In this document: positions 1 through 48,877 of the stretch, in pieces
How the letters are laid out: the number at the start of each line of letters is the position of its first letter
How positions within the stretch are numbered: position 1 is the stretch's first letter
Assembly (NCBI GenBank): GCA_039096225.1
Contig: JBBPEB010000008.1
Span: forward strand, 1 to 64,000
Length of the DNA stretch: 64,000 nt
Source of the DNA: Blastocystis sp. Blastoise
Lineage: Eukaryota > Protista > Bigyra: Opalinata
Direction: 5' to 3'
Notes under the pieces: generated by a model
What the model was told of the DNA's origin: nothing
The model's input: only the letters and a program-made list of their open reading frames with translations
Database searches by the model: none
Position numbers and translations under genes: made by a program

Positions 1-1760
1 TCTCCTCCTGAAGCTTCTTATCGTTTGAATTGTTTTGAAATTACTTATAATTCTGTTTCTATTAATAGATTACCTATTCATTTACCTGATGATCCATATA
101 TATTATTTCGAGAAGGACATGAAGTAGAAGCATTAAGGAATAGTTTAGAGAAAGGTACTAAATTAACAAAATACTTTGATTTAGAGAAAGAAGTTCAGAA
201 TCAAAGAAAGATATATACTTATTATTATATAGAGAAGAAGCATGGTATTCGTAATATGAATAATGTAGAAGAAGAAAGAGAATTGATTCAAGTTCGTTTA
301 GAAGAGATAAATAGAATAAATAGTTATGAAGTAGATGATGATAATATATCCGAAGAATTATTGAAAATATTAGATGAGAAATATCCTATTTATGCTTATC
401 ATGAAATACCAAAATATTATGTATGGAAATCGAATACAAATACTTGGAATAGACGTCAGAGAGATATAAAAGCTTTAGGAAGAATGTATTATGTGAATCC
501 AAAAGATAAGGAACGATATGCTTTGAGATTATTATTATTGAATACGAAAGGAGCTGATAGCTTTGATTCTTTGAAGATAGTAAAAGGATTGAATAGTAAT
601 GAACCTTATAGAACCTTTAGTGAAGCAGCTATAGCAAGAGGATTATTGAATAATGAGAGAGAAGTATTTGATTCATTTTCAGAAGCTATTGTTTTTGCTA
701 CTCCATGTCAATTGAGACAATTATTTATTACTTATATTTCAGAATCATTATTAACAAATGTGAAAGAGTTTTGGATTCGATTTAAATCATTTCTTAGTGA
801 GGATTATAAACATTCAATGCATAATAATGAAATAGATTATATAAATACTCCTTTAGCTCAAGATTTAGATTCATCAAGTGTTATAGAAGATGATACTAAT
901 AGTGTTCTTCAAGATTATGAAATACGTACTTTACAAGATATAAAAGAGATGATGATAAGTATAGGAGTGAATTATAATGATTTAGGATTACCTCAAGTAG
1001 AAGAACAACATCATTATAATGATTATAATTATAATCCTACATTAGAATTACAAGAAGCTAATAGAGTAATAGAATTATTAAATGAAGAACAAAGAAATGC
1101 ATTTGATAGAGTAATTCATTCAATAGAAAGTAGTAGAATAGAAGATAAGTTATGTTTCTTTATAGATGGTCCAGGTGGAAGTGGAAAGACTTTCTTATAT
1201 AATAGTTTATTAAGTTATTTACGTGGACATAATAAGAATGTATTACCTGTAGCTTCAACAGGAATTGCTTCTACTTTATTACCAGGTGGTAGAACAGCTC
1301 ATAAACAATTTGGTATTCCTTTGAATGTTGATCCTGATTCTACTTCAAATATAGATTTAGCTAGAGATAGAAGAAAAGTAGAAGAAATAAGAATAGCTGA
1401 TTTAATAATATGGGATGAAGCTCCTATGATGAAAGGTGATTGTTTTATGGTAGTACATAGATTATTATGTGATATAATGAATACAGAATTAGATATTCCT
1501 TTTGGTGGTAAAACAGTAGTATTAGGAGGAGATTTCAGACAATGTTTACCAGTTATAAGAAAAGGAACTCAAGCTCAGATTGTTAGTTCTTCTATAAAGT
1601 TTTGTTCCTTATGGAATTCTATCAAAAATAATGTCATTCATTTATCAAGAAATATGAGAGCTTTAGAAGGAGCAGATGATTTTAGACAATGGTTATTACA
1701 AGTAGGAGATGGTGTTCTTTCTAATAATTATACTATTAGTCATCATTTAGATATAGATTA
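1..1760 (+). pseudogene. Helitron RepHel, central fragment (Pif1 helicase motifs I-IV), truncated by nested insertion
   Basis: GPGGSGKT Walker A, IIWDEAPM, GGDFRQCLPV. Translation identical to the intact RepHel up to ...HLDIDY; the stop TAG comes from the inserted element's CTAG. Confidence 0.95.
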
Positions 1761-1976
1761 CTAGGGTCACGCCGCAGGTCCGGGGCCTAACGGCACCGGA
1801 CCGCGGCTGCAATGAATAATAACTGTTTGGTTTTTATTTACTTTCTTTCCTTTTTATCTATTATATATTATATATTATATATTATATAATATATATTATT
1901 TATTAAATATTATCTATAATATGTTACTTATTATATATTATATATTATATATTATATATATTATTTTAATAACACT

Positions 1977-2044
1977 TCTTATACTCTATATGGAGAGTAG
2001 CAATCATTTATTGATTGTAATCAGGTTCAATTCCTGATATAAGA
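1977..2044 (+). ncRNA. tRNA-like cloverleaf (diverged copy), antisense to its Helitron
   Basis: TCTTATA-CTCT atatgg AGAG-ta-GCAATC atttatt GATTGT-aa-TCAGG ttcaatt CCTGA-TATAAGA. Confidence 0.7.
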
Positions 2045-3529
2045 ACTAAATAGATTATTTGAATAGTATCTGAAAAACTAAAAACAATACTTGAAGAAAA
2101 TAAGAAATCCTTTTTGAATCATTATATTTGTTATTTATTATTTTAAAAATATATTTTGTATTTATAAATAGTTAAATTACTGTTTTAATTATTATGGAGT
2201 TTCTAAAGGTAATAAATTTAGAAATGGGTCATAATGTTAAGTATTGAAAAATATTTTTATGTTGTAAAATCATTTTAAATAGATTATAATAAAATAGCAT
2301 AAACTTATTTTAATCATTTCATAAAAATAAAACAAATCTAACACAACAAAGTCAACATTCATTTTGACTTTAACGACTTAAACACAAAGTTTTTGAATTA
2401 ATATTAATAAATTCAATCTAAATAGCATTTCTAAACACAAAAGTGTCAACAATATTACTTTTAGAGAGACTTTACCATTTCGATATCAAGTGTATCAAAA
2501 TAGTTTTAGACATAACTTCCACATAGTATAGATCTCATTATTTTATTTATTAATTCAAGTTTAATGTCTTGAATCTCTGACTTCAAGATCATTTTTAACA
2601 CATTTTGAAAGGTTGACACACTTATAATTAATTTTAAAAGCTAATATTATAACACTATACTCATCATAACTCTATCAACATAAGAGTCACCATTTTGACA
2701 CTCTTTATAAACATTTTACATTTGGTCATACACTTTGTCAAGTGTATTTTTGTCCTTTCTTTTGATATAATTTAGAATATAATTCATAGTTTGATAAATA
2801 AAATATTTTATATTGAATCTCATCCTTTGGATAATTCATTTCTACATTTAAAAATATTAATCCCTTTAAACTTGTTTTTAAAAGTCAAAATTTTCATAGT
2901 CTAATGAAAACACAATTTTAAAAGAATATACTAACTCTTTAAAATTTCTAGACAACTCAAACACATTGTTAATTCACTTTTCAAAAATGAAATTCTCTTA
3001 TTTTTTAATATGTTGTAGAATTTAGCTTATTATATATTAAACTTCTATTAGAATTTCGAATCTCCTATTTTAAGATAATATTTTTTATTTTACAACCTTA
3101 AAGTTACTTTTATGAGTTAATACGTTCACAAAATTATGTAAATATAAATGCTAGTAAACAGAGAAACTCAAAACTTAAATATCTCAATTATTGACAGTTT
3201 TAAATCAGTAATACTATACAGTGTTAAAAGTGACAATAAATGTTTTAAAATTTAATTCAAATATTTAAAAACTTGACACTATTTAACATACTAAGTATTT
3301 CAAGAATTATCTTAATAGTCGACACAATTTAAATAAAAAAAAAAGAAAAAGAACAAAACAAAAATAGCAAAAGAAAACATTTAAATATAGAATAGCTAAA
3401 ACGATAACAACAGCATAAATAAATAAATAATATAAAGAAAGCAGATAATAGAAAGCTATTAAATGTGAAAAATAATAATAATAATAAACAAAAGAAAAAG
3501 AAAAAGAACTAAAAAAAAAAAAATCTAAA

Positions 3530-4779
3530 CATAACCATAACACTAAGAGAACCTATATAGATAAAAGATATATATATATAATAAGAGATAGTATAATAAA
3601 TATATCTAACATATATATATTAAAAGAAATATTATAAATATTTGTTATATATATATATATATACCTTTAGATACATTTTTATTATTAAAATGAAAGCTAA
3701 CATTAGGGTGATAAGATCCCCTATTAGAAAAGACACCTATATATAATATAATAAATGATAAAATATATATAAACAATAAATATATATATATACCTTCTAA
3801 AGAAGGAACAGAGGAATCACCATGATATCTTAACTGACTTGAAGAACCTATATATAATGAAAAGATAATTAATAAATCAAAAAAAAAAAGAAAGGAAGAA
3901 ATAAGAATATACCTGTATCATTATTACTATTAATCCAAGACTCCATAAGAAAAGAACGACCTATATAAGATAAAAATAATAATAAACTAAATTAAATTTA
4001 AAAAGTAGACATACCTTCATCATTAATACGTTCAGCAACTACAACCACAACAGTAGAATAACCTATAAAGAAACAGTAATAGACAAATAATAAATAAAAA
4101 AAAAAATAATAATAAATGAATGACAATATATATATACCTTTAATATCATATGAGCAGTCTACCTGATCACCAACAACATCCATAGCAACATTTACATCAA
4201 TAAAACAAATCTATATATATAAAAGTAAAAAAAAAAAAATAAATGAATGACAACATACCTTCAACACCACACAGACATCTATTATCAACATCACTGTTAA
4301 CATGTACAACAACTGAAGAACCTATATATATATAGAAATAATAAAAAAATAATAATAAAATATAAAAAAAAAAATAAATGATTGGTAACATACCATCTAT
4401 AAAGCAAGAAGAACCTACATCAACACCGATATCACTATTGGAATCACTTACAATAACAGAAGAACCTATAAATAAAGAAAAGTTAAAAAAATAAAAACAA
4501 ATCATTGACAACATACCTTCACAGTTAGCATAACAGGCAACACCACCACCACTGCATAATTCAAATAGCATAGAAGAACCTAAAATAATATAATAAATAA
4601 TTAAAAAAAAAAGAAATGGAAAAATATATACCTTAAAGACCATCATAGCAAGTACCACCAAGACCAAGAGCATACACAACTGGATTTTATTGAGTAGAAG
4701 AACCTGATTTTCTTTGAAATATAAATTATTTTTTATTTCCAGGCCTCCTCCTGGATGACATTTTGTTGTTTTCAGACAT
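3530..4779 (-). pseudogene. Diverged, decayed micro-exon cassette in the non-autonomous core
   Basis: MSENNKMSSRRRPGNKK*FIFQRKSGSSTQ*... is collinear with MPRKGRMSSRRRSLNQKKYVSQRRSSSSTQQ. Repeated ag|GTTCTTC...G|gtat exons, three in-frame TAA and one 3n+1 exon. Confidence 0.8.
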
Positions 4780-5567
4780 CTTATTTAATAATATAATATA
4801 CAATTAAGTATTTGAATATGTATTTAAGAATCCTATTTCATTTGTATTAATAAATATAATAGGGTCTATTTTCAAAATATGCTTCTTTAAACATAATAGA
4901 AATAAAAAAAAACCTTAATTTTTTATTGATTTTGTTACTAAAGTAATAATTGGGTCATTCTTATTTAAAATCATTTTGGGTACCCAAAAAACATAGTTCT
5001 TTACTCTTTTTTTAAATATTTAATTATATTGATTGACTGAGTATGTTTTATTTATTTATTTGATATTGTTTAGTTATTATTTTTATATATATTTGTATGT
5101 ATATATTTATTTATTTAAAATAATACACTTTTCTATAGGATTCTTTTGTATTTTCCTTGGTTGTGGTGTTGAAGTGTTCTTGAAGTGGTCTTGGCTGTGT
5201 AAAATGGTTTATTTATGATCAGGTATATAAATATATTATTTATTTCTTAAGATCTGTTTTTCTTTTTGTTAATTCGTTTTTATTATTTATTATTTTTATT
5301 ATCAATATTATTTATTTAGTCTTTACATATAATTTATTCTATATATTATTAATAATTTTTATTCTATAGGAAAGAAACTTTAATGGATGTGTTGTGGTCT
5401 TCGTTGCTAAATATTTTCCTTCTTTAATCTGTCGTTCAAGGTTATTTTAAAGGTATATATTTATATTTTATTTATTATTTTTATTATTTATTGTTTACTT
5501 TTTTTTTATTATTTATTTATTTATTTATTATTTATTTATTCATTTTTTTTATATGTTTATTTATTTA

Positions 5568-5615
<48 letters not shown>

Positions 5616-6160
5616 TGTTTATTATTTATTTATTTATTTATTTATTTATTATGTTTATTTATTGTATATAGGTTTAATATTCTTCTTAGTTTTTTTTTTC
5701 TTCTTTCTATCTTCGTTCTTCTTCCTTCTTACTTCTTCCTTCTTCCTCATCTTTCCTACTTACTTCTTCTTCCTTCCTTCTTCTTCCTTCTTCCTTCTTC
5801 CTATTTCCTTCTTCATTCCTTCTTCCTTCTTCCTATTTCCTTCTCCATTCATGCTTCCTTCTTCCTATTTCATTCTTCATTCATGCTTCCTACTTCCTAC
5901 TTCCTTCTTCCTTCTTCCTCATCTTTGATTCTTCTTACTTACTTCTTCTTCATTCTGGATTCTTCCTTCTTCCTCATCCTTCCTTATTCTTACTTCTTCT
6001 TACTTCCTTCTTTCTCATCCTTCTTCCTCATCCTTCCTTATTCTTACTTCTTCTTCCTAATCCTTCCTACTTCCTTCTTCCTCATCCTTCCACTTCATTT
6101 CCTTCTTATTATATATATATAAATATATATATTTGATTATTATTATTATTTATAAACTCC

Positions 6161-6227
6161 CTTTATGCTCTAGAAGGAGAGAAACAATCATTATAGATTG
6201 TTTTCAGGTTCAATTCCTGACATGAAG
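6161..6227 (+). ncRNA. tRNA-like cloverleaf, antisense to its Helitron
   Basis: CTTTATG-CTCT agaagg AGAG-aa-ACAATC attata GATTGT-tt-TCAGG ttcaatt CCTGA-CATGAAG. T-arm contains the B-box GGTTCAATTCC. Confidence 0.7.
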
Positions 6228-8163
6228 TCTTATTTTTCTTTTTCTTTAATATTTTTTACATATTATATATATATATATATTTTCTCTTTTTTTAAACTTA
6301 TTTTTATCTCTTTTAGATTATACCTTTTAAATTTTGACATTATATACATATATCTAACTGTTTATAGTTTTTTTAGACTTCCTCTTCTCAACAACAGTCA
6401 CAATGAGAACAAATCCATTTTAACTCAAACAACTAAGTCATCTCAAAACTGCTTGAATCAATTAATATAGACGTCTATGACATAATTTATCAATTTAAAC
6501 TGATTTTCAACTCTCAAAAGTAAGCAAACCAAACACACATGTTGACTTTAAAACGTTAAACTCAGTATTAAAAGATAGTTTTTATAGAGTGGACATAAAA
6601 CATTGATTTAAACAAAAAGGAATGGAAACAATCAACTCTTGATACAACTTTACCATTTGACAAAACACTCATCCACAATATTTTCCAAAGTTCTTTTAGT
6701 AAAGTGTTTATATAGACATATTATGTATAAAATGAAAGTCAACTTCTTGAATCTCTTTGTTTAAGATAGTCTTTAAAACAGTTTGACAAATTGACAACCT
6801 TTAACTTGCAATTTAAAGCTAATATTTAAAGAATAGACTTGATTCAGACATGTAAACACAACTGTCATCACCATAACACTTTTAAAGACACTTTACCATT
6901 TGGTCATACACTTTGATCAAAATATTTTTGTCCCTTCTTTTGACATAATATAGACTGTGTGGTCTAGTTATATGAAAGTGAGGCGGAATTTTGAATCTCG
7001 TCCTCTAAGTCACTCATTTTTACATCTTTGAAAATTAAGACCCTTAGAGTTGATTTTTGAAGTTAATTTTTCTACAGTGTTCCAAAAACGCGATTTTGCA
7101 CAAACTGAAGTGAAAATATTTTTTCAATAACTCTCACAACCCTTTACACATCCACTCTTTAAAAATTATTTTCTTTGTACTTTTGATATGTTGTAGAGCT
7201 ACTACAGCTGTACACTAATTAATATCTCTAAATTTTTTATTCATAGTTTAAGACTATGTTTTATACATTCTTTTGAATTTGACAACCTTAAACTATTTAT
7301 TTAAAACTATTATTCATAGAATAGACTTAATACATGATTCTAAACACATATAGAAACCCTTTTACTATTTAAGACACATTTTGTCATTTGGTCAAACACT
7401 TTGATCTTCATAATTTTGACTCTCCTTTTAACATAGAATAGAGTAATATCTCAAGTTTACTAAATAAAAGTCATTGTATTGAATCTTGTCCTCTAAGACC
7501 ACTTAATTCACATTTTTCAAAATTGTCATACTTAAACTCATTATTTTAAGACTCTGTTTTAACTATAGTAGTTTGATGACCTATTGATTACAATGCTGTA
7601 ATATTAGTCCATTATAAGAAGATCGAAGAAAATATCGATCACTCAAAAATCGTCTTCAGGAGCTCAAAATCGCTACACCTAGGTTTTCTGACCTCCTGAA
7701 TCAGAATATGATGTCAAATTGACAATCTAAATTTGACCGTTAAGGCCTCACGTGTTCAATATGAAAAAGTATTAAAAAATAGATAAATATAAAGAATAAA
7801 CACGGATAACGTATATTGTGGGATTGAGAAAAAATCAAGTTTACCCCATGTTTATTTTCCAATTGTCTGGTCAACAATTTTTATCGGGGTCACCCCAAAG
7901 AGCCAATCAAAAACGACTCAAAAATCATGTTTTCTGTTCTTTTATTAATATCTTTTTAATTATAAATAATATCGCTTAACCAAATATACGGTGCACAACT
8001 ACACGTTATATCCTATTGAACTGTGTTTCAACCAAAAGTTAACTTCCCGTAAGTTTAGAGGAGTTGCGGCGACAAACTATAGTATATAGTAGCCAATCAA
8101 ATGCATTCTCCAAAAACTGACCAATGGGAATTTTTTTGCCTATTCTCATATATATAGTAATGA

Positions 8164-8550
8164 TAATACACTTTTTTATAGGATTCTCTTGTATTTGTCT
8201 TGGTTGTGGTGGTGAGTGGTTCTTAAAGTGGTCCTGGTTGTGTGAAATGGGTTACTTATTATCAGGTATATAAATATATTATTTATTTCTTAACATCTGT
8301 TTATTTTTTACTAATTACTTTTTGTTATTATTTAATTTTATTATCTATATTATTTATTTTGTCTTTTTATATCATCTATTAAATTGTTTTTAATTATTTT
8401 TATTCTATAGGAAAGAAAATGTTGTTGATGTGTTGTGGTCTTCGTTTTTTCATGTCGTTCTTCTTAGTCTGTGGTTTCAGATTATTCTATTAGGTATATA
8501 TTTATATTTTATTTATTGTTTTCATTTTTATTATTTATTATTTATGTTTT

Positions 8551-8581
<31 letters not shown>

Positions 8582-8785
8582 TTATATTTATTTATTTATT
8601 TATTATATTTATTTATTTATTTATTATATTTATTATATTTATATATATTTATTTATTATATTTATTTATTTATTTATTATATTTATTTATTTATTATATT
8701 TATTTATTTATTTATTTATTTATGTTTTTTATTTATTTATTATATTTATTATATTTATTATATTTATTATATTTATTTATTTATT

Positions 8786-8816
<31 letters not shown>

Positions 8817-9200
8817 TTTTATGTTATCTTTTTATATTTTTTCTATTTTATATAGGTTTAATAGTCTTCTTGTTCCTTTTTCTTCTTTCTTCCTTCTTTC
8901 TACTTCATTTTACTTCTTCCTTATCCTTCCTACTACCTTCTTCCTCATTCTTCATTCTTCATTCTTCATTCTTCATTCTTCCTTCCTACTTCCTACTTCC
9001 TCATCCGTCATTCTTCCTTCTTCCTTCTTCTTCCTTCTTCTTCCTACTTCCTCATCCTTCTTTCTTCATCCTACTTCTTCCTTCTTCCTTCTTCTTCCTT
9101 CATCCTTCTTCCTACTTCTTCCTTCTTCCTTCATCCTTCATCCTTCCTTCTTCTTTCTTCCTACTTCCTACTTCCACATTCTTCCTACTTCCTTCATTCC

Positions 9201-9238
<38 letters not shown>

Positions 9239-11266
9239 ATTATTATTATTACTCTTTAAACTCCCTTTATGCTCTGGAAGGAGAGAAGCAATCATTATAG
9301 ATTGTTTTCAGGTTCAATTCCTGACATGAAGTCTTATTTTTCTTTTTTTAAATATTTTATTTATATATTATTATATATATATATTCTCTTTTTTAAATTT
9401 ATTTTAATCCAGTTTAATTTATACTTTTCAATTTTGACCTTATATATATATATATCTAACTTTTTATAGTTTTTTTAGACTTACTCTTCTCAACAACAGT
9501 CACAATGAGAACAAATCCATTTATACTTAAACAGCCAAGTCATCTTAAAACTGATTATATCAATCAAAATACATGTGTTAAACTTGTTTTATTGATTTAA
9601 ACTCAATTTTAATAATTAAAAGTAAACAAACCAAACACACATGTTGACTTTAAAACTTTAAACTCAGTGTTAAATGGTTAGTTTTAAAGAGTAGACACAA
9701 AACATTGATTTATACTAAAAGGAATGAAAACAATCAACTCTTGATACAACTTTACCATTTGATAAAACACTCATCCACAATATTTTCCAAAGTTCTTTTA
9801 GTAAAGTGTTTATATAGACATATAATGTATAAAATGAAAGTCAACTTCTTGAATCTCTTATTTTAGGACAGTCTTTAAAACATTTTGACAAATAGACAAC
9901 CTTTAACTTGCTATTTAAAGCTAATATTTTAAGAGTAGACTTGATTTAAACCTATATACACAACTGTCATCATCATAACACTTTTAAAGACACTTTACCA
10001 TTTGCTCATACACTTTGATCAAAACATTTTCGTCCCTTCTTTTAATATAATATAGATCATACACTCTAGTTTAATGAATAAAAGCTCTTATTTTGAATCT
10101 CGTCCTCTAAGTCACTCATTTTTACATTTTTCAAAATTTAAGACCCTTAGAGTTGATATTTTGACTCAATTTTTCTACAATGCACGAAATTCACGATTTT
10201 ATATAAACTGAAGTGAAAATAAATTTTAAATAATAGTCACAACACCTCACACATCCACTCTCTAAAAATTATTTTCTTTGTACTTTTGATATGTTGTAGA
10301 GCTACTACAGCTGTATACTAATTAATATCTCTAAATTTTTTATTCACAGTTTAAGACTATGTTTTACACATTCTTTTAAATTTGACAACCTTAAACTATT
10401 TATTTAAAGCTATTATTCATAGAATAGACTTGATATAAGATTCTATACACATATATAAACCATTTTACTTTTTAAGACACATTTTGTCATTTGGTGATAC
10501 ACTTTGACCATCATAATTTTGACTCTCCTTTTAACATAGAATAGAGTATTATCTCTAGTTTACTAAACAAAAGTCATTATATTGAATCTTATCCTCTAAG
10601 ACCACTTAATTCACATTTTTCAAAATTGTGACACTCAAACTCATTATTTTAAGACCTTGTTTTAACTATAGTAGTTTGAGGACCTATTGATTACCATTAT
10701 ACAATATTAGTCCATTATAAGAAGATCGAAGAAAATATCGATCACTCAAAAATCGTCCTCAGGAACTCAAAATTGGTACACCTAGGTTTTTCGACCTCCT
10801 GAATCAGAATATCATGTCAAAATAAGAATCTAAATTTGACCGTTAAGGCCTCACGTGTTCAATATGAAAAAGTATTAAAAAATAGATAAATATAAAGAAT
10901 AAACACGGATAACGTATATTGTGGGATTGAGAAAAAATCAAGTTTACCCCATGTTTATTTTCCAATTGTCTGGTCAACAATTTTTATCGGGGTCACCCCA
11001 AAGAGCCAATCAAAAACGACTCAAAAATCATGTTTTCTGTTTTTTTATTAATAACTTTTTAATTATTAATAATATCGCTTAACCAAATATACGGTGCACA
11101 ACTACACGTTATATCGTATTGAACTGTGTTTCACTCAAAAGTTAACTCCCCGTAAGTTTAGAGGAGTTGCGGCGACAAACTATAGTATACATTAGCCAAT
11201 CAAATGGTTTTTCCAAAAACTGACCAATGGGAATTTTTTTGCCTATTCTCATATATATAGTAATGA
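8164..11266 (-). mobile_element. Captured Helitron 5' segment (3,103 bp), equivalent to 16538-19640
   Basis: Starts with the 5' terminus and is collinear with the intact element until an A|T site (19640/19641), where the next 5' TC begins. Direct repeat of 12416-15518. Confidence 0.9.
9265..9331 (+). ncRNA. tRNA-like cloverleaf, antisense to its Helitron
   Basis: Same fold as 6161-6227. Differences are in the D-loop and a G-U-compatible change at the anticodon-stem base. Confidence 0.7.
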
Positions 11267-11277
11267 TATCTATATAC

Positions 11278-12077
11278 CTTTAGCATTAGAAGGATGATCA
11301 CCATCAGATACAGTACCATGAACAGAAGACACTATCAGAACAGAAGGACCTATATATATTTATAAAATAAAAGTAAATCAAAAAGAAGAAAAAGAAAATA
11401 TATTATATATACCTTCTTTATGATTAAGATCAGCACCAACATTCATAGCAACAGAAGAACCTATAATAACATATAAATAGGAAATAAAAGAAATAATTAA
11501 AAATAAATAAATAAATAAATGATTACATACCTTGAAGACCATGAGAAGAGTTAGCATCACCATCAGTAGCATCAGCAACAACATCATCATGAGTATAAGA
11601 ACCTATAGATAAATAAAAATAAAAAAAAAAATAAAATAAATGATTGACAACATACCTTCAAGACCATTAGTGGAGTGTATATCATCATCAATAGCTCCAG
11701 CAACAGAGTCCACAACAACAGAAGAACCTATAGATAAATAAAAATATAAAAATAAAAACAAATGATTGACAACATACCTTCAAGACCACTTGAAAACATT
11801 ATACCATCATCAGTAAAGGACACCAAGGACAGAGAAGAGTCTAAGATAATATAAAATAATAAAACAAAAAGAAATGTATAAATATATACCTTCAAGACCA
11901 TATTGATAAGCACCATCACCATCAATGACATCCATACTTGCATCCTGTTGAGTAGAAGAACCTATATATGAATAATAAAAAAAAATAAATACAATACATA
12001 CTGGACCGTCTTTGAGAAACGTATTTTTTTTGATTCAAGGACCTCCGCCTTGATGACATTCTGCCTTTTCTAGGCAT
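11278..12077 (-). pseudogene. Truncated copy of RepHel micro-exon cassette (exons 1-7)
   Basis: Reverse complement of 19979-20777; cut within intron 7 by the next 5' terminus. Confidence 0.85.
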
Positions 12078-12802
12078 CTTATTTAATAATTTAATAAAAA
12101 TAAGTATTTTTATGTAGAAAACAAAAACATATTCATATTTGAACTTTTGTAAAATAGGGACAATATTTAAAATATGCATATTTAAAAATTAATAGGAATC
12201 ATAAATAACCTCGAATTTTTATTATTATCTTATGCTAAGCTGATAATAGGGACATTTTTTATTAAAAACATTTTGGGTACCCAAAAACTATAGTTTTTTA
12301 CATTTTTTAAATATTTGTTTGTATTGATTGTCTGGGTATGTTTTATTAATTAATTTGATGTTATTTAGTTATTATTTTTATATTTATTTGTATATATTAA
12401 TTTATTTATTTATAATAATACACTTTTTTATAGGATTCTCTTGTATTTGTCTTGGTTGTGGTGGTGAGTGGTTCTTAAAGTGGTCCTGGTTGTGTGAAAT
12501 GGGTTACTTATTATCAGGTATATAAATATATTATTTATTTCTTAACATCTGTTTATTTTTTACTAATTACTTTTTGTTATTATTTAATTTTATTATCTAT
12601 ATTATTTATTTTGTCTTTTTATATCATCTATTAAATTGTTTTTAATTATTTTTATTCTATAGGAAAGAAAATGTTGTTGATGTGTTGTGGTCTTCGTTTT
12701 TTCATGTCGTTCTTCTTAGTCTGTGGTTTCAGATTATTCTATTAGGTATATATTTATATTTTATTTATTGTTTTCATTTTTATTATTTATTATTTATGTT
12801 TT

Positions 12803-12833
<31 letters not shown>

Positions 12834-13037
12834 TTATATTTATTTATTTATTTATTATATTTATTTATTTATTTATTATATTTATTATATTTATATATAT
12901 TTATTTATTATATTTATTTATTTATTTATTATATTTATTTATTTATTATATTTATTTATTTATTTATTTATTTATGTTTTTTATTTATTTATTATATTTA
13001 TTATATTTATTATATTTATTATATTTATTTATTTATT

Positions 13038-13068
<31 letters not shown>

Positions 13069-13452
13069 TTTTATGTTATCTTTTTATATTTTTTCTATTG
13101 TATATAGGTTTAATAGTCTTCTTGTTCCTTTTTCTTCTTTCTTCCTTCTTTCTACTTCATTTTACTTCTTCCTTATCCTTCCTACTACCTTCTTCCTCAT
13201 TCTTCATTCTTCATTCTTCATTCTTCATTCTTCCTTCCTACTTCCTACTTCCTCATCCGTCATTCTTCCTTCTTCCTTCTTCTTCCTTCTTCTTCCTACT
13301 TCCTCATCCTTCTTTCTTCATCCTACTTCTTCCTTCTTCCTTCTTCTTCCTTCATCCTTCTTCCTACTTCTTCCTTCTTCCTTCATCCTTCATCCTTCCT
13401 TCTTCTTTCTTCCTACTTCCTACTTCCACATTCTTCCTACTTCCTTCATTCC

Positions 13453-13490
<38 letters not shown>

Positions 13491-13516
13491 ATTATTATTA
13501 TTACTCTTTAAACTCC

Positions 13517-13583
13517 CTTTATGCTCTGGAAGGAGAGAAGCAATCATTATAGATTGTTTTCAGGTTCAATTCCTGACATGAAG
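13517..13583 (+). ncRNA. tRNA-like cloverleaf, antisense to its Helitron
   Basis: Identical to 9265-9331. Confidence 0.7.
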
Positions 13584-15518
13584 TCTTATTTTTCTTTTTT
13601 TAAATATTTTATTTATATATTATTATATATATATATTCTCTTTTTTAAATTTATTTTAATCCAGTTTAATTTATACTTTTCAATTTTGACCTTATATATA
13701 TATATATCTAACTTTTTATAGTTTTTTTAGACTTACTCTTCTCAACAACAGTCACAATGAGAACAAATCCATTTATACTTAAACAGCCAAGTCATCTTAA
13801 AACTGATTATATCAATCAAAATACATGTGTTAAACTTGTTTTATTGATTTAAACTCAATTTTAATAATTAAAAGTAAACAAACCAAACACACATGTTGAC
13901 TTTAAAACTTTAAACTCAGTGTTAAATGGTTAGTTTTAAAGAGTAGACACAAAACATTGATTTATACTAAAAGGAATGAAAACAATCAACTCTTGATACA
14001 ACTTTACCATTTGATAAAACACTCATCCACAATATTTTCCAAAGTTCTTTTAGTAAAGTGTTTATATAGACATATAATGTATAAAATGAAAGTCAACTTC
14101 TTGAATCTCTTATTTTAGGACAGTCTTTAAAACATTTTGACAAATAGACAACCTTTAACTTGCTATTTAAAGCTAATATTTTAAGAGTAGACTTGATTTA
14201 AACCTATATACACAACTGTCATCATCATAACACTTTTAAAGACACTTTACCATTTGCTCATACACTTTGATCAAAACATTTTCGTCCCTTCTTTTAATAT
14301 AATATAGATCATACACTCTAGTTTAATGAATAAAAGCTCTTATTTTGAATCTCGTCCTCTAAGTCACTCATTTTTACATTTTTCAAAATTTAAGACCCTT
14401 AGAGTTGATATTTTGACTCAATTTTTCTACAATGCACGAAATTCACGATTTTATATAAACTGAAGTGAAAATAAATTTTAAATAATAGTCACAACACCTC
14501 ACACATCCACTCTCTAAAAATTATTTTCTTTGTACTTTTGATATGTTGTAGAGCTACTACAGCTGTATACTAATTAATATCTCTAAATTTTTTATTCACA
14601 GTTTAAGACTATGTTTTACACATTCTTTTAAATTTGACAACCTTAAACTATTTATTTAAAGCTATTATTCATAGAATAGACTTGATATAAGATTCTATAC
14701 ACATATATAAACCATTTTACTTTTTAAGACACATTTTGTCATTTGGTCATACACTTTGACCTTCATAATTTTGACTTTCCTTTTAACATAGAATAGAGTA
14801 TTATCTCTAGTTTACTAAATAAAAGTCATTATATTGAATCTCTCACTCTAAGACCACTTAATTCACACTTTTCAAAATTGTGACACTAAAACTCATTATT
14901 TTAAGACTTTGTTTTAGATATAGTAGTTTGATGACCTATTGATTACAATACTACAATATTAGTTGATTATAAGAAGATCAAAGAAAATATCGATCACTCA
15001 AAAATCGTCCTCAGGAGCTCAAAATTGGTACACCTAGGTTTTTCGACCTCCTGAATCAGAATATCATGTCAAAATAAGAATCTAAATTTGACCGTTAAGG
15101 CCTCACGTGTTCAATATGAAAAAGTATTAAAAAGTAGATAAATATAAAGAATAAACACGGATAACGTATATTGTGGGATTGAGAAAAAATCAAGTTTACC
15201 CCATGTTTATTTTCCAATTGTCTGGTCAACAATTTTTATCGGGATGATCCCAAAGAGCCAATCAAAAACGACTCAAAAATCATGTTTTCTGTTTTTTTAT
15301 TAATAACTTTTTAATTATTAATAATATCGCTTAACCAAATATACGGTGCACAACTACACGTTATATCGTATTGAACTGTGTTTCAGCCAAAAGTTAACTC
15401 CCCGTAAGTTTAGAGGAGTTGCGGCGACAAACTATAGTATACATTAGCCAATCAAATGGTTTTTCCAAAAACTGACCAATGGGAATTTTTTTGCCTATTC
15501 TCATATATATAGTAATGA

Positions 15519-16299
15519 TATTCCTATTCCTCCTCAATGTATTGTGAATGATGATTTATGTGTTACTGTATTTGGACATCGAATCAATACTTCTCTTGAT
15601 TCTGATATCAAACGATTAGCTTCTTCTGTTATATTAGCTTCTACTAATGATTGTGTTGGTACTTTAAATGATTTCATTGTTGATAATCTTCTTTCTGGAA
15701 CTACTACTCCTTATATCTCTTCTGATTCTATTCTTGATTCTGAAACAGATGATCCAGAATCAAATTATCCTATCGAGTTTATCAATTCTCAAACACCTTC
15801 TGGAATGCCTCCTCATATATTAAATTTAAAAATAGGTTGTATCATTATGCTTTTAAGAAATCTTAATCCTTCTAAAGGATTATGTAATGGTACTAGACTT
15901 ATAGTAACTCGATTAGGATCAAATAATATTACTGCTACTATTTTAAATCCTCCTCCTTCTCTTACTATTGATGAACAAACTGTTATTATTCCAAGAATCA
16001 TCTGTAATTCAAATCCTGAAGATCTTCCTATTATTATATCCAGAAGACAATTTCCTATTCGTTTAGCCTTTGCCATGACTATCAACAAATCTCAAGGACA
16101 AACATTTGAAAGAGTTGGTGTTTACTTAGATCGTCCTGTCTTCTCTCATGGTCAACTCTATGTTGCTTTCAGTCGTGCTCGATCTTTCAACGCTCTTTTT
16201 ATTAAGGTAGTTGATAGTGTCTCTCAAGGTAAGATGATTAGTAGTAGTAATGAAATATTTACTAAGAACGTGGTCTTCAGGTCTACTCTAAATAATTAA
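15519..16299 (+). pseudogene. Helitron RepHel C-terminal fragment (Pif1 motifs V-VI)
   Basis: Resumes exactly at the insertion point (tattcctattcc). GLCNGTRL, RRQFPIRLAFAMTINKSQGQT, HGQLYVAFSR. Confidence 0.95.
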
Positions 16300-17099
16300 A
16301 TGCTTTATTTTTTCTTTTTTCTTCTTTTGTTATATTTGTTTGTTTTTGTTTTATGTTTGTTAATTATTTTTTCTTTTTAATCTATTACTTCTTCACTTTT
16401 TATTTGTTTTTTAAATGTTTATAATAAACAAGGTTGTTTTGTTCAATAAAGTTAAAGAAATAATTTTAAAACCCAACTGCACAACGCAGCCGCGGCGCGT
16501 CGCCGTTAGGCGGTGCGCCAGCGGCGTTACCCTAGTATCATTACTATATATATGAGAATAGGCAAAAAAATTCCCATTGGTCAGTTTTTGGAAAAACCAT
16601 TTGATTGGCTAATGTATACTATAGTTTGTCGCCGCAACTCCTCTAAACTTACGGGGAGTTAACTTTTGGCTGAAACACAGTTCAATACGATATAACGTGT
16701 AGTTGTGCACCGTATATTTGGTTAAGCGATATTATTAATAATTAAAAAGTTATTAATAAAAAAACAGAAAACATGATTTTTGAGTCGTTTTTGATTGGCT
16801 CTTTGGGATCATCCCGATAAAAATTGTTGACCAGACAATTGGAAAATAAACATGGGGTAAACTTGATTTTTTCTCAATCCCACAATATACGTTATCCGTG
16901 TTTATTCTTTATATTTATCTACTTTTTAATACTTTTTCATATTGAACACGTGAGGCCTTAACGGTCAAATTTAGATTCTTATTTTGACATGATATTCTGA
17001 TTCAGGAGGTCGAAAAACCTAGGTGTACCAATTTTGAGCTCCTGAGGACGATTTTTGAGTGATCGATATTTTCTTTGATCTTCTTATAATCAACTAATA

Positions 17100-18300
17100 T
17101 TGTAGTATTGTAATCAATAGGTCATCAAACTACTATATCTAAAACAAAGTCTTAAAATAATGAGTTTTAGTGTCACAATTTTGAAAAGTGTGAATTAAGT
17201 GGTCTTAGAGTGAGAGATTCAATATAATGACTTTTATTTAGTAAACTAGAGATAATACTCTATTCTATGTTAAAAGGAAAGTCAAAATTATGAAGGTCAA
17301 AGTGTATGACCAAATGACAAAATGTGTCTTAAAAAGTAAAATGGTTTATATATGTGTATAGAATCTTATATCAAGTCTATTCTATGAATAATAGCTTTAA
17401 ATAAATAGTTTAAGGTTGTCAAATTTAAAAGAATGTGTAAAACATAGTCTTAAACTGTGAATAAAAAATTTAGAGATATTAATTAGTATACAGCTGTAGT
17501 AGCTCTACAACATATCAAAAGTACAAAGAAAATAATTTTTAGAGAGTGGATGTGTGAGGTGTTGTGACTATTATTTAAAATTTATTTTCACTTCAGTTTA
17601 TATAAAATCGTGAATTTCGTGCATTGTAGAAAAATTGAGTCAAAATATCAACTCTAAGGGTCTTAAATTTTGAAAAATGTAAAAATGAGTGACTTAGAGG
17701 ACGAGATTCAAAATAAGAGCTTTTATTCATTAAACTAGAGTGTATGATCTATATTATATTAAAAGAAGGGACGAAAATGTTTTGATCAAAGTGTATGAGC
17801 AAATGGTAAAGTGTCTTTAAAAGTGTTATGATGATGACAGTTGTGTATATAGGTTTAAATCAAGTCTACTCTTAAAATATTAGCTTTAAATAGCAAGTTA
17901 AAGGTTGTCTATTTGTCAAAATGTTTTAAAGACTGTCCTAAAATAAGAGATTCAAGAAGTTGACTTTCATTTTATACATTATATGTCTATATAAACACTT
18001 TACTAAAAGAACTTTGGAAAATATTGTGGATGAGTGTTTTATCAAATGGTAAAGTTGTATCAAGAGTTGATTGTTTTCATTCCTTTTAGTATAAATCAAT
18101 GTTTTGTGTCTACTCTTTAAAACTAACCATTTAACACTGAGTTTAAAGTTTTAAAGTCAACATGTGTGTTTGGTTTGTTTACTTTTAATTATTAAAATTG
18201 AGTTTAAATCAATAAAACAAGTTTAACACATGTATTTTGATTGATATAATCAGTTTTAAGATGACTTGGCTGTTTAAGTATAAATGGATTTGTTCTCATT
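17100..18300. repeat. Degenerate ~245-bp tandem array in the Helitron 5' region (also about 2300-3100, 6400-7560, 9500-10670, 13750-14920)
   Basis: Motifs such as ctttaccattt(g)g..cacttt and ttgaatct recur at ~244 and ~489 bp spacing (e.g. about 6648, 6891, 7380). Confidence 0.6.
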
Positions 18301-18472
18301 GTGACTGTTGTTGAGAAGAGTAAGTCTAAAAAAACTATAAAAAGTTAGATATATATATATATAAGGTCAAAATTGAAAAGTATAAATTAAACTGGATTAA
18401 AATAAATTTAAAAAAGAGAATATATATATATAATAATATATAAATAAAATATTTAAAAAAAGAAAAATAAGA

Positions 18473-18539
18473 CTTCATGTCAGGAATTGAACCTGAAAAC
18501 AATCTATAATGATTGCTTCTCTCCTTCCAGAGCATAAAG
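18473..18539 (-). ncRNA. tRNA-like cloverleaf in the intact Helitron, antisense to RepHel
   Basis: Reverse complement of 13517-13583. Confidence 0.7.
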
Positions 18540-18565
18540 GGAGTTTAAAGAGTAATAATAATAAT

Positions 18566-18599
<34 letters not shown>

Positions 18600-18603
<4 letters not shown>

Positions 18604-18940
18604 GGAATGAAGGAAGTAGGAAGAATGTGGAAGTAGGAAGTAGGAAGAAAGAAGAAGGAAGGATGAAGGATGAAGGAAGAAGGAAGAAGTAGGAAGAAGG
18701 ATGAAGGAAGAAGAAGGAAGAAGGAAGAAGTAGGATGAAGAAAGAAGGATGAGGAAGTAGGAAGAAGAAGGAAGAAGAAGGAAGAAGGAAGAATGACGGA
18801 TGAGGAAGTAGGAAGTAGGAAGGAAGAATGAAGAATGAAGAATGAAGAATGAAGAATGAGGAAGAAGGTAGTAGGAAGGATAAGGAAGAAGTAAAATGAA
18901 GTAGAAAGAAGGAAGAAAGAAGAAAAAGGAACAAGAAGAC
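18600..18940. repeat. Polypurine/polypyrimidine (GAAG/CTTC)-rich tract followed by (AAAT)n tract to about 19300; copies at about 5690-6110, 8865-9200, 13115-13450
   Basis: Directly visible low-complexity repeats; they explain the spurious F/L/S/I/Y-rich ORFs. Confidence 0.9.
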
Positions 18941-18987
18941 TATTAAACCTATATACAATAGAAAAAATATAAAAAGATAACATAAAA

Positions 18988-19018
<31 letters not shown>

Positions 19019-19222
19019 AATAAATAAATAAATATAATAAATATAATAAATATAATAAATATAATAAATAAATAAAAAACATAAATAAATAAATAAATAA
19101 ATAAATATAATAAATAAATAAATATAATAAATAAATAAATAAATATAATAAATAAATATATATAAATATAATAAATATAATAAATAAATAAATAAATATA
19201 ATAAATAAATAAATAAATATAA

Positions 19223-19253
<31 letters not shown>

Positions 19254-19769
19254 AAAACATAAATAATAAATAATAAAAATGAAAACAATAAATAAAATAT
19301 AAATATATACCTAATAGAATAATCTGAAACCACAGACTAAGAAGAACGACATGAAAAAACGAAGACCACAACACATCAACAACATTTTCTTTCCTATAGA
19401 ATAAAAATAATTAAAAACAATTTAATAGATGATATAAAAAGACAAAATAAATAATATAGATAATAAAATTAAATAATAACAAAAAGTAATTAGTAAAAAA
19501 TAAACAGATGTTAAGAAATAAATAATATATTTATATACCTGATAATAAGTAACCCATTTCACACAACCAGGACCACTTTAAGAACCACTCACCACCACAA
19601 CCAAGACAAATACAAGAGAATCCTATAAAAAAGTGTATTATTATAAATAAATAAATTAATATATACAAATAAATATAAAAATAATAACTAAATAACATCA
19701 AATTAATTAATAAAACATACCCAGACAATCAATACAAACAAATATTTAAAAAATGTAAAAAACTATAGT

Positions 19770-19785
19770 TTTTGGGTACCCAAAA
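19770..19785. promoter_or_regulatory. Perfect 16-bp palindrome TTTTGGGTACCCAAAA between divergent Helitron transcription units (also 12271-12286, 4974-4989)
   Basis: Seen directly and unchanged in the diverged copy. Regulatory role is inferred from position. Confidence 0.45.
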
Positions 19786-19978
19786 TGTTTTTAATAAAAA
19801 ATGTCCCTATTATCAGCTTAGCATAAGATAATAATAAAAATTCGAGGTTATTTATGATTCCTATTAATTTTTAAATATGCATATTTTAAATATTGTCCCT
19901 ATTTTACAAAAGTTCAAATATGAATATGTTTTTGTTTTCTACATAAAAATACTTATTTTTATTAAATTATTAAATAAG

Positions 19979-22900
19979 ATGCCTAGAAAAGGCAGAATGT
20001 CATCAAGGCGGAGGTCCTTGAATCAAAAAAAATACGTTTCTCAAAGACGGTCCAGTATGTATTGTATTTATTTTTTTTTATTATTCATATATAGGTTCTT
20101 CTACTCAACAGGATGCAAGTATGGATGTCATTGATGGTGATGGTGCTTATCAATATGGTCTTGAAGGTATATATTTATACATTTCTTTTTGTTTTATTAT
20201 TTTATATTATCTTAGACTCTTCTCTGTCCTTGGTGTCCTTTACTGATGATGGTATAATGTTTTCAAGTGGTCTTGAAGGTATGTTGTCAATCATTTGTTT
20301 TTATTTTTATATTTTTATTTATCTATAGGTTCTTCTGTTGTTGTGGACTCTGTTGCTGGAGCTATTGATGATGATATACACTCCACTAATGGTCTTGAAG
20401 GTATGTTGTCAATCATTTATTTTATTTTTTTTTTATTTTTATTTATCTATAGGTTCTTATACTCATGATGATGTTGTTGCTGATGCTACTGATGGTGATG
20501 CTAACTCTTCTCATGGTCTTCAAGGTATGTAATCATTTATTTATTTATTTATTTTTAATTATTTCTTTTATTTCCTATTTATATGTTATTATAGGTTCTT
20601 CTGTTGCTATGAATGTTGGTGCTGATCTTAATCATAAAGAAGGTATATATAATATATTTTCTTTTTCTTCTTTTTGATTTACTTTTATTTTATAAATATA
20701 TATAGGTCCTTCTGTTCTGATAGTGTCTTCTGTTCATGGTACTGTATCTGATGGTGATCATCCTTCTAATGCTAAAGGTATATAGATATATCATATATAT
20801 ATATTTTTTATTATTCTTTTAATTCTTTCTTATTTGTTTTTATATAGGTCCTTCAACTCAGTTAGTACATGGTCATTCTTCTATTCCTTCTTCAGAAGGT
20901 ATATATATATATATATATATATATGTATCTATGTTTATTCTATTTTATGATTCTATATAGGTGTGTCTTTTAATTTGGGATCGTGTGACTCTGTTGTTGG
21001 TCTTGATATAGTTACTACTAATATATATAAAGGTATATATATATATATATAATATTATTTATTTATTTATACTTATACTATTGTATATATATATATAGGT
21101 GATGGTGTTAATAATTCTTCAGTCGTTGATGGTGTCAACAATTCTTCAATTATTCAATGTATATTTATACTTATATTATATTCTATACTTATATAGGTTC
21201 AAATAAAGTTGTGGGTAAGTATTATTTATTATTTTAGTTTCTTTTTCTTTTGTTTTATTATTTTTTTTCTTTCACAGATAATAGCTTTCTGTTGTCTGCT
21301 TTCTTTTTATTATCTATTTATATATTTATTTACTAAGCTTAGCTTTAGCTACTTAGTATTTAAATATTTAATAGAATCCTTTCTTTTTTCATTTTTGTTT
21401 TGTTATTTTTTTTTTTATTTTAATTTTACTTTAATCGTATCGATTAACGGGAAGGTGTCGGATATTAAGATAATTTTTGAATTACTTAATATTAAATAGT
21501 GTTGAGTATTTTAATATTTGTATTTAATTTAATTAATACAACTATTGATTACCTATATGACTCATACTATTGCTGACTATTGTTCGCTTCTAACTCTATA
21601 TAGTCTAACCGATGTAATACTATCAATGATGAGATATCTAAGTGTTAAGATTCTTCACTTACTCACATTGTATATGATATTAACTGGTAGTTAGCTATAT
21701 GTTTATAGAATGTTGTAACAAAGCACAATAGCTATAGATGTCCTCTATGAGGTTGAATCATATAGATTGTTTAATAAATTATACAATATTAATTACCTAT
21801 ACTTATTTAATATTAGTTTTCATTAATTATAATATTATCTTTCATTACATTATAGTATTGAAGATAATTATTAATTAATAAAGTTTTTACTTTATATTAT
21901 TTAATATATCATACTATATGTATGTATTATTATATTAATAAAGGTTATATACTTTATATTAATAAATATATCATAGTATATCTATGTATTATTATATTAA
22001 TAAAGGTTATATACTTTATATTAATAAATATATCATAGTATATCTATGTATTATTATATTAATAAATGTTATACTTTATATTAATTAATATATCATAGTA
22101 TATTCTATGTATTATTATATTAATAAAGGTTATATACTTTATATTAATATATATAATATCATACTATACTTATGTATTATATTATATTAATAAAGGTTAT
22201 ACTTTATATTAATAAATATATCATAGTATATCTATGTATTATATTATATTAATAAGAGTTATATACTTTATATTAATAAATATATCATACTATATCTATG
22301 ACTTATATTATATTAATAAAGGTTATACTTTATATTAATTAATATATCATACTATACTTATGTATCATATTATATTGATGAAGGTTATACTTTATATTAA
22401 TTAATATATCATACTATACTTATGTATGTATTATTATATTAATAAATGTTATACTTTATATTAATATATATATTATCATACTATATCTATGTATTATATT
22501 ATATTAATAAAGGTTATACTTTATATTAATTAATAAATACTTCAACAACTATAACAATGAAAGTTAATTTATATACTACACAACTAAACTTTATTCTAAA
22601 CTTAAACATAATATATTTAATATCTAATAATTAATATATATAGGTTCCAATAAGGATAAAATAAATAATAATGATTTATCTAAATCATTTGGTTTTAACT
22701 CAAAACCTTTAGCTTTGTTTTCGACTTTTAATTTTCAAAATAATATTCCTTTACAAAACATTCAAAACAATAATTCAAATAACAATATTGATATTGATAT
22801 CGATAATCGTTATTCACAAATAAATAATAATAATTCTATATTAAATAATGGTTCAAACCTATTCAATCAAATGAATCCAGTTAATCAATCAATTAATAAC

Positions 22901-28376: not shown

Positions 28377-28565
28377 ATGCTTTATTTTTTCTTTTTTCTT
28401 CTTTTGTTATATTTGTTTGTTTTTGTTTTATGTTTGTTAATTATTTTTTCTTTTTAATCTATTACTTCTTCACTTTTTATTTGTTTTTTAAATGTTTATA
28501 ATAAACAAGGTTGTTTTGTTCAATAAAGTTAAAGAAATAATTTTAAAACCCAACTGCACAACGCA

Positions 28566-28611
28566 GCCGCGGCGCGTCGCCGTTAGGCGGTGCGCCAGCG
28601 GCGTTACCCTA

Positions 28612-28612
<1 letters not shown>
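28566..28612 (+). terminator. Helitron 3' terminator hairpin + CTAG (identical copy at 16489-16535; variant on minus strand at 1761-1807)
   Basis: GCCGC GGCGCGTCGCC gtta GGCGGTGCGCC a GCGGC gttaccCTAG. Confidence 0.9.
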
Positions 28613-41276: not shown

Positions 41277-41312
<36 letters not shown>

Positions 41313-41584
41313 TGAATAATAATAATTCTATGACTCTTCCTCCTCTTGGTTATCCTCGTATTAATAATTCAAATCCTGTTAATACATCTATACCTTTTAA
41401 TAATAGTATTAATCAAAAGAATAATATGGCTTCTTCTACTACTACTCTTTCTAAATCTGTACCTATTTCACAAGTACCTTCAACTACTCTTGGTTCTCTT
41501 CTTAAAAGTAAACAACAACAAAATAAACAAAAAAATAATTCAACTGCTTCTAATCCTAATTCTCGTATTTCTACTAGTTCTGTA

Positions 41585-41628
<44 letters not shown>

Positions 41629-48787: not shown

Positions 48788-48877
<90 letters not shown>

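Follow-up and report, generated by a model that had tools for sequence, protein, structure and literature searches.

A tRNA-like module conserved in antisense orientation within Helitrons of Blastocystis sp. Rus-B

Introduction

Why should a rolling-circle DNA transposon carry, again and again, a short segment that folds like a transfer RNA (tRNA)? The question is raised by a 64,000-nucleotide (nt) stretch of the genome of Blastocystis sp. Rus-B ('Blastoise'), from the tortoise gut (contig JBBPEB010000008.1, positions 1 to 64,000; here called the window), in which an initial annotation had noticed five cloverleaf-like copies of one module, each lying antisense within a Helitron. Short ends and a 3' hairpin are the only cis needs known for Helitrons, which are also known to capture gene fragments, and we know of no Helitron that maintains a structured non-coding RNA module. 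The assembly analysed here comprises 33.3 Mb in 34 contigs with 23% GC. Strain Rus-B has been described as a Russian-tortoise isolate of 33.3 Mb, 33 contigs and 23.1% GC, and the transposable elements of tortoise Blastocystis isolates have been put at 5.6-7.5% (PMC10690189); the passages of that paper on matching terms make no mention of the module, and the word 'tRNA' occurs 0 times in its main text.

Five copies of two types

To describe the module, a covariance model (R1) was built from nine module variants and scored at every position of the window. Its only matches are the five intervals that had been annotated as 67-68 nt cloverleaves, all at 90-99 bits, while the reverse strands reach 13-28 bits. 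These are c1 (1977..2044, plus strand, 68 nt, 98.8 bits), c2 (6161..6227, plus, 93.7 bits), c3 (9265..9331, plus, 90.4 bits), c4 (13517..13583, plus) and c5 (18473..18539, minus), the last inside the autonomous Helitron B described below; alignment also identifies c2 and c4. The T-arm sequence TCAGGTTCAATTCCTGA is likewise found exactly five times in the window (at 2021, 6204, 9308 and 13560 on the plus strand and at 18480 on the minus strand), compared with 0.01 expected by chance. Copies c3, c4 and c5 are the same in sequence and lie within 3.1-4.3 kb repeats that are 99-100% identical; c2 differs from them at 2 positions, and c1 represents a second type. We refer to c1 as type t1 and to c2-c5 as type t2 (variant t2c for c2, t2a for c3-c5). 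All five annotated copies are present, but they are two types and not five independent witnesses.

The anatomy largely agrees with that first described. The module has a 7-bp acceptor stem, a D stem of 4 bp (CTCT/AGAG) that directly adjoins the acceptor stem without a linker at positions 8-9, GG at the end of the D loop, and a T arm of 5 bp whose loop reads TTCAATT. The central arm had been read as a 6-bp stem set off by linkers, with a short variable region; the short variable loop stands, whereas the linkers do not. RNAalifold shows pairing and covariation between columns 26-27 and 47-48 (T-A in t1, A-T in t2), and because these 2-nt 'linkers' pair, the central arm has 8-9 bp with a loop of 5-6 nt, and the junction is without linkers. 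The cloverleaf is the minimum-energy fold of every folded variant, with z-scores of -2.8 to -3.7 (c1: -20.3 kcal/mol, z -3.7; c3: -20.4 kcal/mol, z -3.2). Loops and linkers had been said to change freely. This holds for the D loop and for the central ('anticodon') loop, which ranges over 5-7 nt among variants (ATTTATT, ATATATT, AGTAAAT, ATTATA, ATATA and others), but not for the covarying linkers, nor for the T loop TTCAATT and the D-loop GG, which are invariant in 30 t1/t2 variants apart from a single variant with GGCTC.

Selection on the fold

The two types can be compared as paralogues. A block on the t1 side (2045..3160, plus strand) is a diverged paralogue of 9332-10451, next to t2, and the alignment of 1914-3160 with 9200-10451 gives 63.5% identity over 1291 nt (E 9e-99). 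Since the flanking blocks are paralogous, t1 and t2 share one origin. Within this region the module forms an identity peak, at 78-88% against a background of about 50% (flanks 50-55%).

Among the 24 pairs of the t1 and t2 consensus cloverleaves, 5 are changed on both sides, 1 is changed on one side and 0 are broken, giving P~1e-5 under independence, a value obtained before counting that all five double changes restore pairing. The three compensatory swaps and the one G-U change that had been reported for the acceptor stem were all recovered in this comparison. Two of the five double changes are transversions (T-A to A-T), which excludes decay through AT-biased transitions as the source of those two. 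Across the 30 distinct variants, 97.5% of cells are paired, compared with 40-50% when partners are slid, and 6 pairs are changed on both sides. For example, one C-G pair of the central arm becomes U-A within t1, and a U-G state is also present at that pair. The T arm of t1 and t2 varies in only 3 single-variant changes.

Flanking sequence was studied in 125 genomic loci, the copies being the best R1 matches. Among distinct copies the module has a diversity of 0.057 in t1 and 0.022 in t2, compared with 0.17-0.26 for the flanks, a contrast that is inflated by the choice of copies as best module matches. Judging from these alignments, near-identical modules beside flanks that differ by about 25% could not be explained by chance. 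The proposal that the structure is under selection can therefore be upheld on three grounds: the compensatory changes between t1 and t2, the C-G to U-A change within t1, and the perfectly paired stems of six further types described below. As far as comparison of copies can show it, the fold of the module has been kept by purifying and compensatory selection while the surrounding transposon diverged.

A tRNA-derived cloverleaf that does not decode

How does such a module relate to a tRNA? ARAGORN calls no tRNA in the window or in 60 module loci, and Rfam at gathering thresholds returns nothing for the window. At permissive thresholds, t1 (c1) reaches 27.9 bits with the Rfam tRNA model, short of the cut-off of 29, and t2 is not matched by that model at E<10. 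These outcomes are those the initial annotation had expected of something that is not a normal tRNA. The Rfam alignment of t1 places the D arm in another register (a CU linker followed by CUAU/GUAG), which was rejected for CTCT/AGAG as it is not kept in t2.

Several features of a decoding tRNA are missing from the module, including recognition by the detectors, a 7-nt loop with a conserved anticodon context, the linkers at 8-9 and 26, and the variable loop. A T loop of the TTCRANN kind and the D-loop GG, as in tRNAs, are present, and the T arm contains GGTTCAATTCC, which we take to fit the B-box consensus. Types t1 and t2 are not independently retroposed units with a body and tail of their own, as a tRNA-derived short interspersed nuclear element (SINE) would be, and they occupy fixed Helitron positions. 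The make-up of the module is rather that of mascRNA, whose cloverleaf likewise does not decode but keeps the acceptor/T-arm helix and the elbow intact. The parts that are kept are the acceptor/T-arm helix, the elbow formed by the D-loop GG with the T loop, and the B-box; the decoding part is free to vary or is replaced, and in two of the further types (D and E) the central arm is wholly a (TA)n hairpin. The kept parts are those read by tRNA-handling proteins. Comparison with known tRNA structure thus shows a module that is tRNA-derived and non-decoding.

The G-U pairs, as had been suggested, bear on the strand, and in t2 they favour the tRNA-sense one. Type t2, which has two of them, folds at -20.4 kcal/mol on the tRNA-sense strand compared with -11.4 kcal/mol (z -1.4) on the reverse. 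Subfamilies with 13-17 copies or more have G-U states fixed, and C-A states, the equivalent of G-U pairs on the opposite strand, are found only in variants of at most 3 copies.

The carrier Helitrons

The elements that carry the module show every hallmark of a Helitron: a 5'-TC start, a hairpin plus CTRR-3', insertion between A and T, and a Rep-helicase (RepHel) protein. Helitron B (16538..28612, plus strand) is an autonomous element of 12.1 kb that begins 5'-TCATTAC... and ends with a hairpin and GTTACCCTAG-3' at 28612, followed by T; this 3' end is identical to that of a second copy, Helitron A, at 16535. The RepHel gene of Helitron B (19997..28376, plus strand) consists of micro-exons followed by a 1559-codon open reading frame (ORF) at 23697-28376 with Helitron_like_N, PIF1 and Pif1_2B domains (Pfam), and the annotated product P0001, of 2079 amino acids, maps by tblastn from 19997 via the micro-exons into this large ORF. 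The start of the gene (19997-23764) is a cassette of short repeated exons, about 60-75 nt each, with short introns beginning in GT.

Helitron A (1..1764, plus strand) has a RepHel ORF that is interrupted after the PIF1 domain and resumes at 15521-16296; the element ends in CTAG at 16535. The interruption (1765..15520, minus strand) lies between A and T within the helicase ORF, as can be seen from its junctions: where an intact ORF copy has GATTAT ATTCC, the left side reads GATTA|CTAGGGTCACGCC and the right side AGTAATGA|TATTCC. Read on the minus strand, this 13.7-kb insert starts with TC, ends with a GC-rich hairpin and CTAG and is flanked by A and T, and because these features match the Helitron signature it is itself a Helitron, of the non-autonomous kind. 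The Helitron 5' end motif occurs at 8163, 11266 and 15518 (minus strand), as well as at 16538 (plus strand) for Helitron B, and the insert holds a single hairpin-CTAG, at 1761-1783. Given the repeated 5' motif and the single 3' end, the insert can be read as a composite of three stacked 5' parts (ending at 15520, 11268 and 8165) and one 3' part. Each stacked 5' part contains one t2 module, and the 3' part contains the t1 module. A truncated copy of the RepHel exon cassette is also found in the stacked unit at 11268-12190 (minus strand).

All five modules of the window are antisense to their own Helitron, as first annotated, and these carriers have the 5'-TC, hairpin-CTAG-3', A|T insertion and RepHel that identify them. 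Copy c5 lies 1.9 kb from the 5' end of Helitron B and 1.46 kb upstream of the RepHel start codon, in divergent orientation, and c2-c4 occupy the equivalent position in the stacked 5' parts. Copy c1 is 213 nt from the hairpin-CTAG end of the composite element.

Some further features of this cluster can be described here. The end of Helitron A (CTAG, 16535) and the start of Helitron B (TC, 16538) are separated only by TA, a head-to-tail join. Around a 1015-bp remnant of the Helitron A 3' region there is a 4.27-kb inverted repeat (11251-15520 / 16536-20804) with arms 98-100% identical, which reflects a very recent event or else an artefact of assembly. In every case the t2 module and the transposase start are separated by about 0.8 kb of low-complexity repeats, (TTTA)n-type and pyrimidine-rich (8430-9260, 12680-13510, 18545-19400), and a (TATAA)n tract lies between the t1 module and the 3' hairpin. 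Two autonomous families, one in the window and one in locus L125 (at about 4905), have their helicase ORF interrupted at almost the same place by a non-autonomous Helitron that bears t1 and lies antisense. The shared point is just after the PIF1 domain, the two families have a protein identity of 41%, and the junctions are GATTA|CTAGGG and GATATA|CTAGGG; this repeated insertion point could be a target hot spot or the product of shared recombination.

Copies across the genome

Beyond the window, the 15-nt core of the T arm occurs 254 times in the genome, with 0 occurrences of the reversed control, and the best 150 R1 matches in the genome all score 84-100 bits. Among distinct copies in loci with long flanks, a Helitron 3' end lies at most 600 nt upstream of 33 of 36 t1 copies and of 0 of 20 t2 copies. 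For t1 the distance to the Helitron 3' end is 203-257 nt in 30 of the 36 loci, and t2 is always found in the context of a Helitron 5' region. All 56 distinct t1 and t2 loci with flanks belong to one of these two Helitron contexts, without a solo copy. The t1 subfamilies have differing 3' terminal sequences and strongly diverged flanks, with the module retained. Other autonomous Helitron families in the genome show 41%, 38% and 36% protein identity, and a comparison of coordinates by hand places an antisense module 5.5-9.9 kb upstream of the helicase region in at least 11 autonomous copies.

In loci L091-L124, each t1 module is followed at a distance of 110-140 nt downstream by a second conserved block (...TTGTATTTATAAATAATTAAACAACTGTTT..., at 2156-2185 in the window), which is common to all t1 subfamilies despite their diverged surroundings. 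The block at 2545-2850 is 65-78% identical to its paralogue on the t2 side.

MULE domains at 28 places in the genome have no consistent pairing with modules by comparison of coordinates, and a metagenome scan for the module gave 0 matches. The T arm has 19 matches in bacterial and archaeal genomes, but ARAGORN finds no tRNA at the position in 12 of 12 checked, and these matches give no lead to an origin.

A wider family of modules

Gap patterns anchored on the T-arm core brought out 48 further modules that share the T loop and the GG at the end of the D loop. They have a 7-bp acceptor stem around TTAA, and their other stems differ by type. Six types, A-F, were read by eye from the printed pattern matches, with no alignment made and no statistic computed. 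Type A (about 28 copies) has the acceptor stem CCTTAAG/CTTAAGG, the D stem CTTA/TAAG, the central arm TCTATCA...TGATAGA and the T stem ACAGG/CCTGT. Type B (13 copies) has the same acceptor stem with the central arm TTTCAATCA...TGATTGAAA, and type C (3 copies) has ACTTAAG/CTTAAGT with AGTCT...AGACT. Types D and E (4 copies each) share the acceptor stem ATTTAAG/CTTAAAT and a central hairpin of (TA)n or (GTATATAT)n, and differ in their 6-bp D stems, CTCCAT/ATGGAG in D and TTCTAT/ATAGAA in E. Type F (1 copy) has CCTTAAA/TTTAAGG. Examples are found at C2:789685-789764, C3:92297-92378, C5:11769-11848, C14:1363385-1363467 and C24:922862-922942, with 43 other places.

Every acceptor stem of these further types is perfectly paired, and their D, central and T stems, for all their differences, pair as well. 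Across the eight types, covariation is seen at acceptor positions 1, 2, 6 and 7. The T stem opens with a T-A pair in t1, t2, C, E and F, and with A-T in A and B. Types A-F all retain the T loop and the D-loop GG. In the printed matches, flanks of 7-9 nt are identical or nearly so within a type, and because of this agreement within types, the A-F modules can be placed within larger repeats. One further variant, at C15:202364 and C31:555832, lies antisense, 5.5 kb upstream of family-1 RepHel ORFs, so that at least part of the wider clade is also Helitron-borne.

The description of a Helitron module should accordingly be widened: t1 and t2 do sit at fixed Helitron positions, but relatives occur in other sequence contexts. 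The module is not the oddity of one Helitron but a genome-wide family with at least 254 copies, two Helitron positions and relatives elsewhere.

What the module may do

We hold, with moderate confidence, that the module is a tRNA mimic carried by Helitrons as a conserved antisense cis-module that would act at the RNA level, through RNA polymerase III (Pol III) and/or RNase P and RNase Z. Pol III would transcribe the tRNA-sense strand autonomously from the intact B-box, or this strand would be copied as part of a longer antisense RNA. RNase P and RNase Z, perhaps along with the CCA-adding enzyme, could then recognise the fold, and the outcome would be a small RNA of about 68 nt and/or defined ends on the flanking transcript, in the manner of mascRNA. 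Transposon lineages that keep the fold would propagate better, a putative benefit. More tentatively, the whole family of non-decoding tRNA mimics (at least eight stem types and at least 300 copies) may be a shared, selected cis-module of DNA transposons that exploits the host tRNA machinery (Pol III/TFIIIC, RNase P/Z) for propagation. Possible uses include a small RNA, the punctuation of antisense transcripts, or a barrier that the Pif1-type Helitron helicase would read as 'stop soon'.

Care must be taken with this interpretation, as several observations weigh against it. The A-box is poor, agreeing at about 6 of 9 specified positions when compared by eye with the consensus. Runs of T5 and T7 begin at +5 after t2 (c5 is followed by TTATTTTTCTTTTTTT), and several t1 subfamilies have T5-T9 at +12 to +18, but such runs are frequent by chance in a genome of 77% A+T, and the commonest t1 subfamilies are without a T-run within 50 nt downstream. 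The commonest t1 variants are all Watson-Crick, so that both strands fold (-20.3 and -16.0 kcal/mol). Besides the inflated diversity contrast mentioned above, variants with broken pairs exist in 2-6 copies, with a C-A mismatch in the T stem, terminal acceptor pairs lost or a deletion in the D arm. Because of these variants, the fold can be regarded as favoured, not as obligatory for copying.

Alternatively, the module could work at the level of DNA and protein, with the B-box recruiting TFIIIC and TFIIIB and any RNA being a by-product. In one variant it would separate the Helitron 5' end from the divergent RepHel promoter as an insulator or roadblock; in another, t1 would make the Pif1-type RepHel helicase pause about 200 nt ahead of the 3' end and so help it to stop at the hairpin-CTAG. 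Pif1-family helicases deal with tRNA-gene barriers in yeasts, the positions of the module are fixed relative to element ends and gene, and its near-invariant T arm suggests sequence-specific reading over structure alone. It has also been speculated that a tRNA near a Helitron 3' end may serve as a termination signal (PMC10701932). However, binding to duplex DNA needs no complementarity between the sides of a stem, and the covariation of the acceptor, D and central stems across eight types weakens this explanation; the replacement of the central arm by a (TA)n hairpin likewise preserves shape and not sequence. We therefore regard a purely DNA-level role as unlikely.

A cloverleaf of single-stranded DNA is the next alternative. 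Helitrons move via single-stranded DNA, and the module might serve in rolling-circle transposition, for instance as a start for the complementary strand like the single-strand origins of plasmids, a role that the subterminal place of t1 near the 3' end and its good folding on both strands would suit. Strand asymmetry weakens this idea: the TC...CTAG strand is presumed to be the one that is transferred, yet its complement folds better, and on the transferred strand t2 folds poorly, at the z-score of -1.4 given above. Moreover, t2 lies 1.9 kb inside the element, and the invariant T loop TTCAATT, the D-loop GG and the B-box are hallmarks of tRNA biology and not of DNA priming sites. This role seems rather improbable.

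The module could also be a small mobile or recombining unit in its own right, similar to the head of a SINE or of a miniature inverted-repeat transposable element, that has been nested repeatedly and owes its conservation to its own propagation. The presence of the T-loop core at 48 other places, with different stems and type-specific flanks, fits such a unit. The paralogous flanks of t1 and t2 indicate instead that the module was duplicated along with its surroundings, and together with its fixed positions within Helitrons (0 of the 56 inspected t1/t2 loci are solo) they weaken this explanation, which would still have to account for the covariation of the stems and which we consider quite improbable.

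Finally, although Helitrons capture host DNA, t1 falls just below the Rfam tRNA cut-off and ARAGORN calls no copy a tRNA, a neutral, decaying relic of a captured tRNA gene or pseudogene is very improbable and already disfavoured, since the stems covary through compensatory transversions, the module exceeds its flanks in conservation by a factor of 4-8 and 0 pairs are broken between paralogues whose flanks are only 50-55% identical.

Should an RNA-level role for the module hold true, it would be the first selected RNA-type cis-element in rolling-circle transposons. The module suggests that DNA transposons, too, are tied to the tRNA machinery (Pol III/TFIIIC, RNase P/Z), as has so far been known mainly for retroelements and RNA viruses. 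It is small, abundant and sharply defined, and its host is already in culture, so that the hypothesis can be put directly to the test with small-RNA sequencing.

Other features of the window

Outside the Helitron cluster, the window contains large ORFs at 40790-44086 (plus strand), 44896-49419 (minus strand) and 53314-61086 (minus strand). An ORF of 1098 amino acids has no Pfam match, one of 1507 amino acids has only a weak match to He_PIG (immunoglobulin-like), and the third is 2590 amino acids long.

Comparison with known systems

The view that no such module was known in Helitrons agrees with our literature search, in which no paper describing a Helitron tRNA-like module was found. The closest case is a cluster of tRNA-Cys genes overlapping annotated Helitrons in Arabidopsis, where, as in Blastocystis, tRNA-type sequence lies inside Helitron sequence (PMC10701932). 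The Arabidopsis genes are real, expressed tRNAs, whereas the module is not a tRNA; the Arabidopsis Helitrons were unconfirmed by three Helitron-finding programs (PMC10701932), and the Blastocystis carriers are proven Helitrons. The authors of that study note that a Helitron capturing a non-coding RNA would be without precedent (PMC10701932).

Other systems share single aspects with the module. The heads of tRNA-derived SINEs are likewise of tRNA origin, repetitive and non-decoding, with a B-box. SINEs, however, are retroposed units with their own body and tail, whereas t1 and t2 are internal antisense parts of rolling-circle transposons and are copied as DNA; covariation of the full cloverleaf, which the module shows, is not expected in SINE heads. 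Insulators made of tRNA genes (tDNA) or of extra-TFIIIC (ETC) sites resemble the module in its B-box-like GGTTCAATTCC and in its place between an element end and an RNA polymerase II (Pol II) gene, but insulation needs no RNA fold, and the fold of the module covaries. The tRNA-like structures of viruses, such as those of plant RNA viruses, are also tRNA mimics carried by a genetic parasite; these lie in sense at the 3' ends of RNA genomes and in many cases are aminoacylated, whereas the module is antisense in a DNA transposon.

The nearest structural counterparts come from the 3' ends of the long non-coding RNAs MALAT1 (mascRNA) and NEAT1 (the MEN-beta tRNA-like element). These are likewise non-decoding cloverleaves in which the acceptor/T-arm helix and elbow are kept and the anticodon arm is degenerate, and the presumed readers are alike, namely RNase P, RNase Z and the CCA-adding enzyme. 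They differ from the module in that its junction is without linkers. While mascRNA forms the end of a defined Pol II host-gene transcript in vertebrates, the module is found in hundreds of copies in the DNA transposons of a stramenopile.

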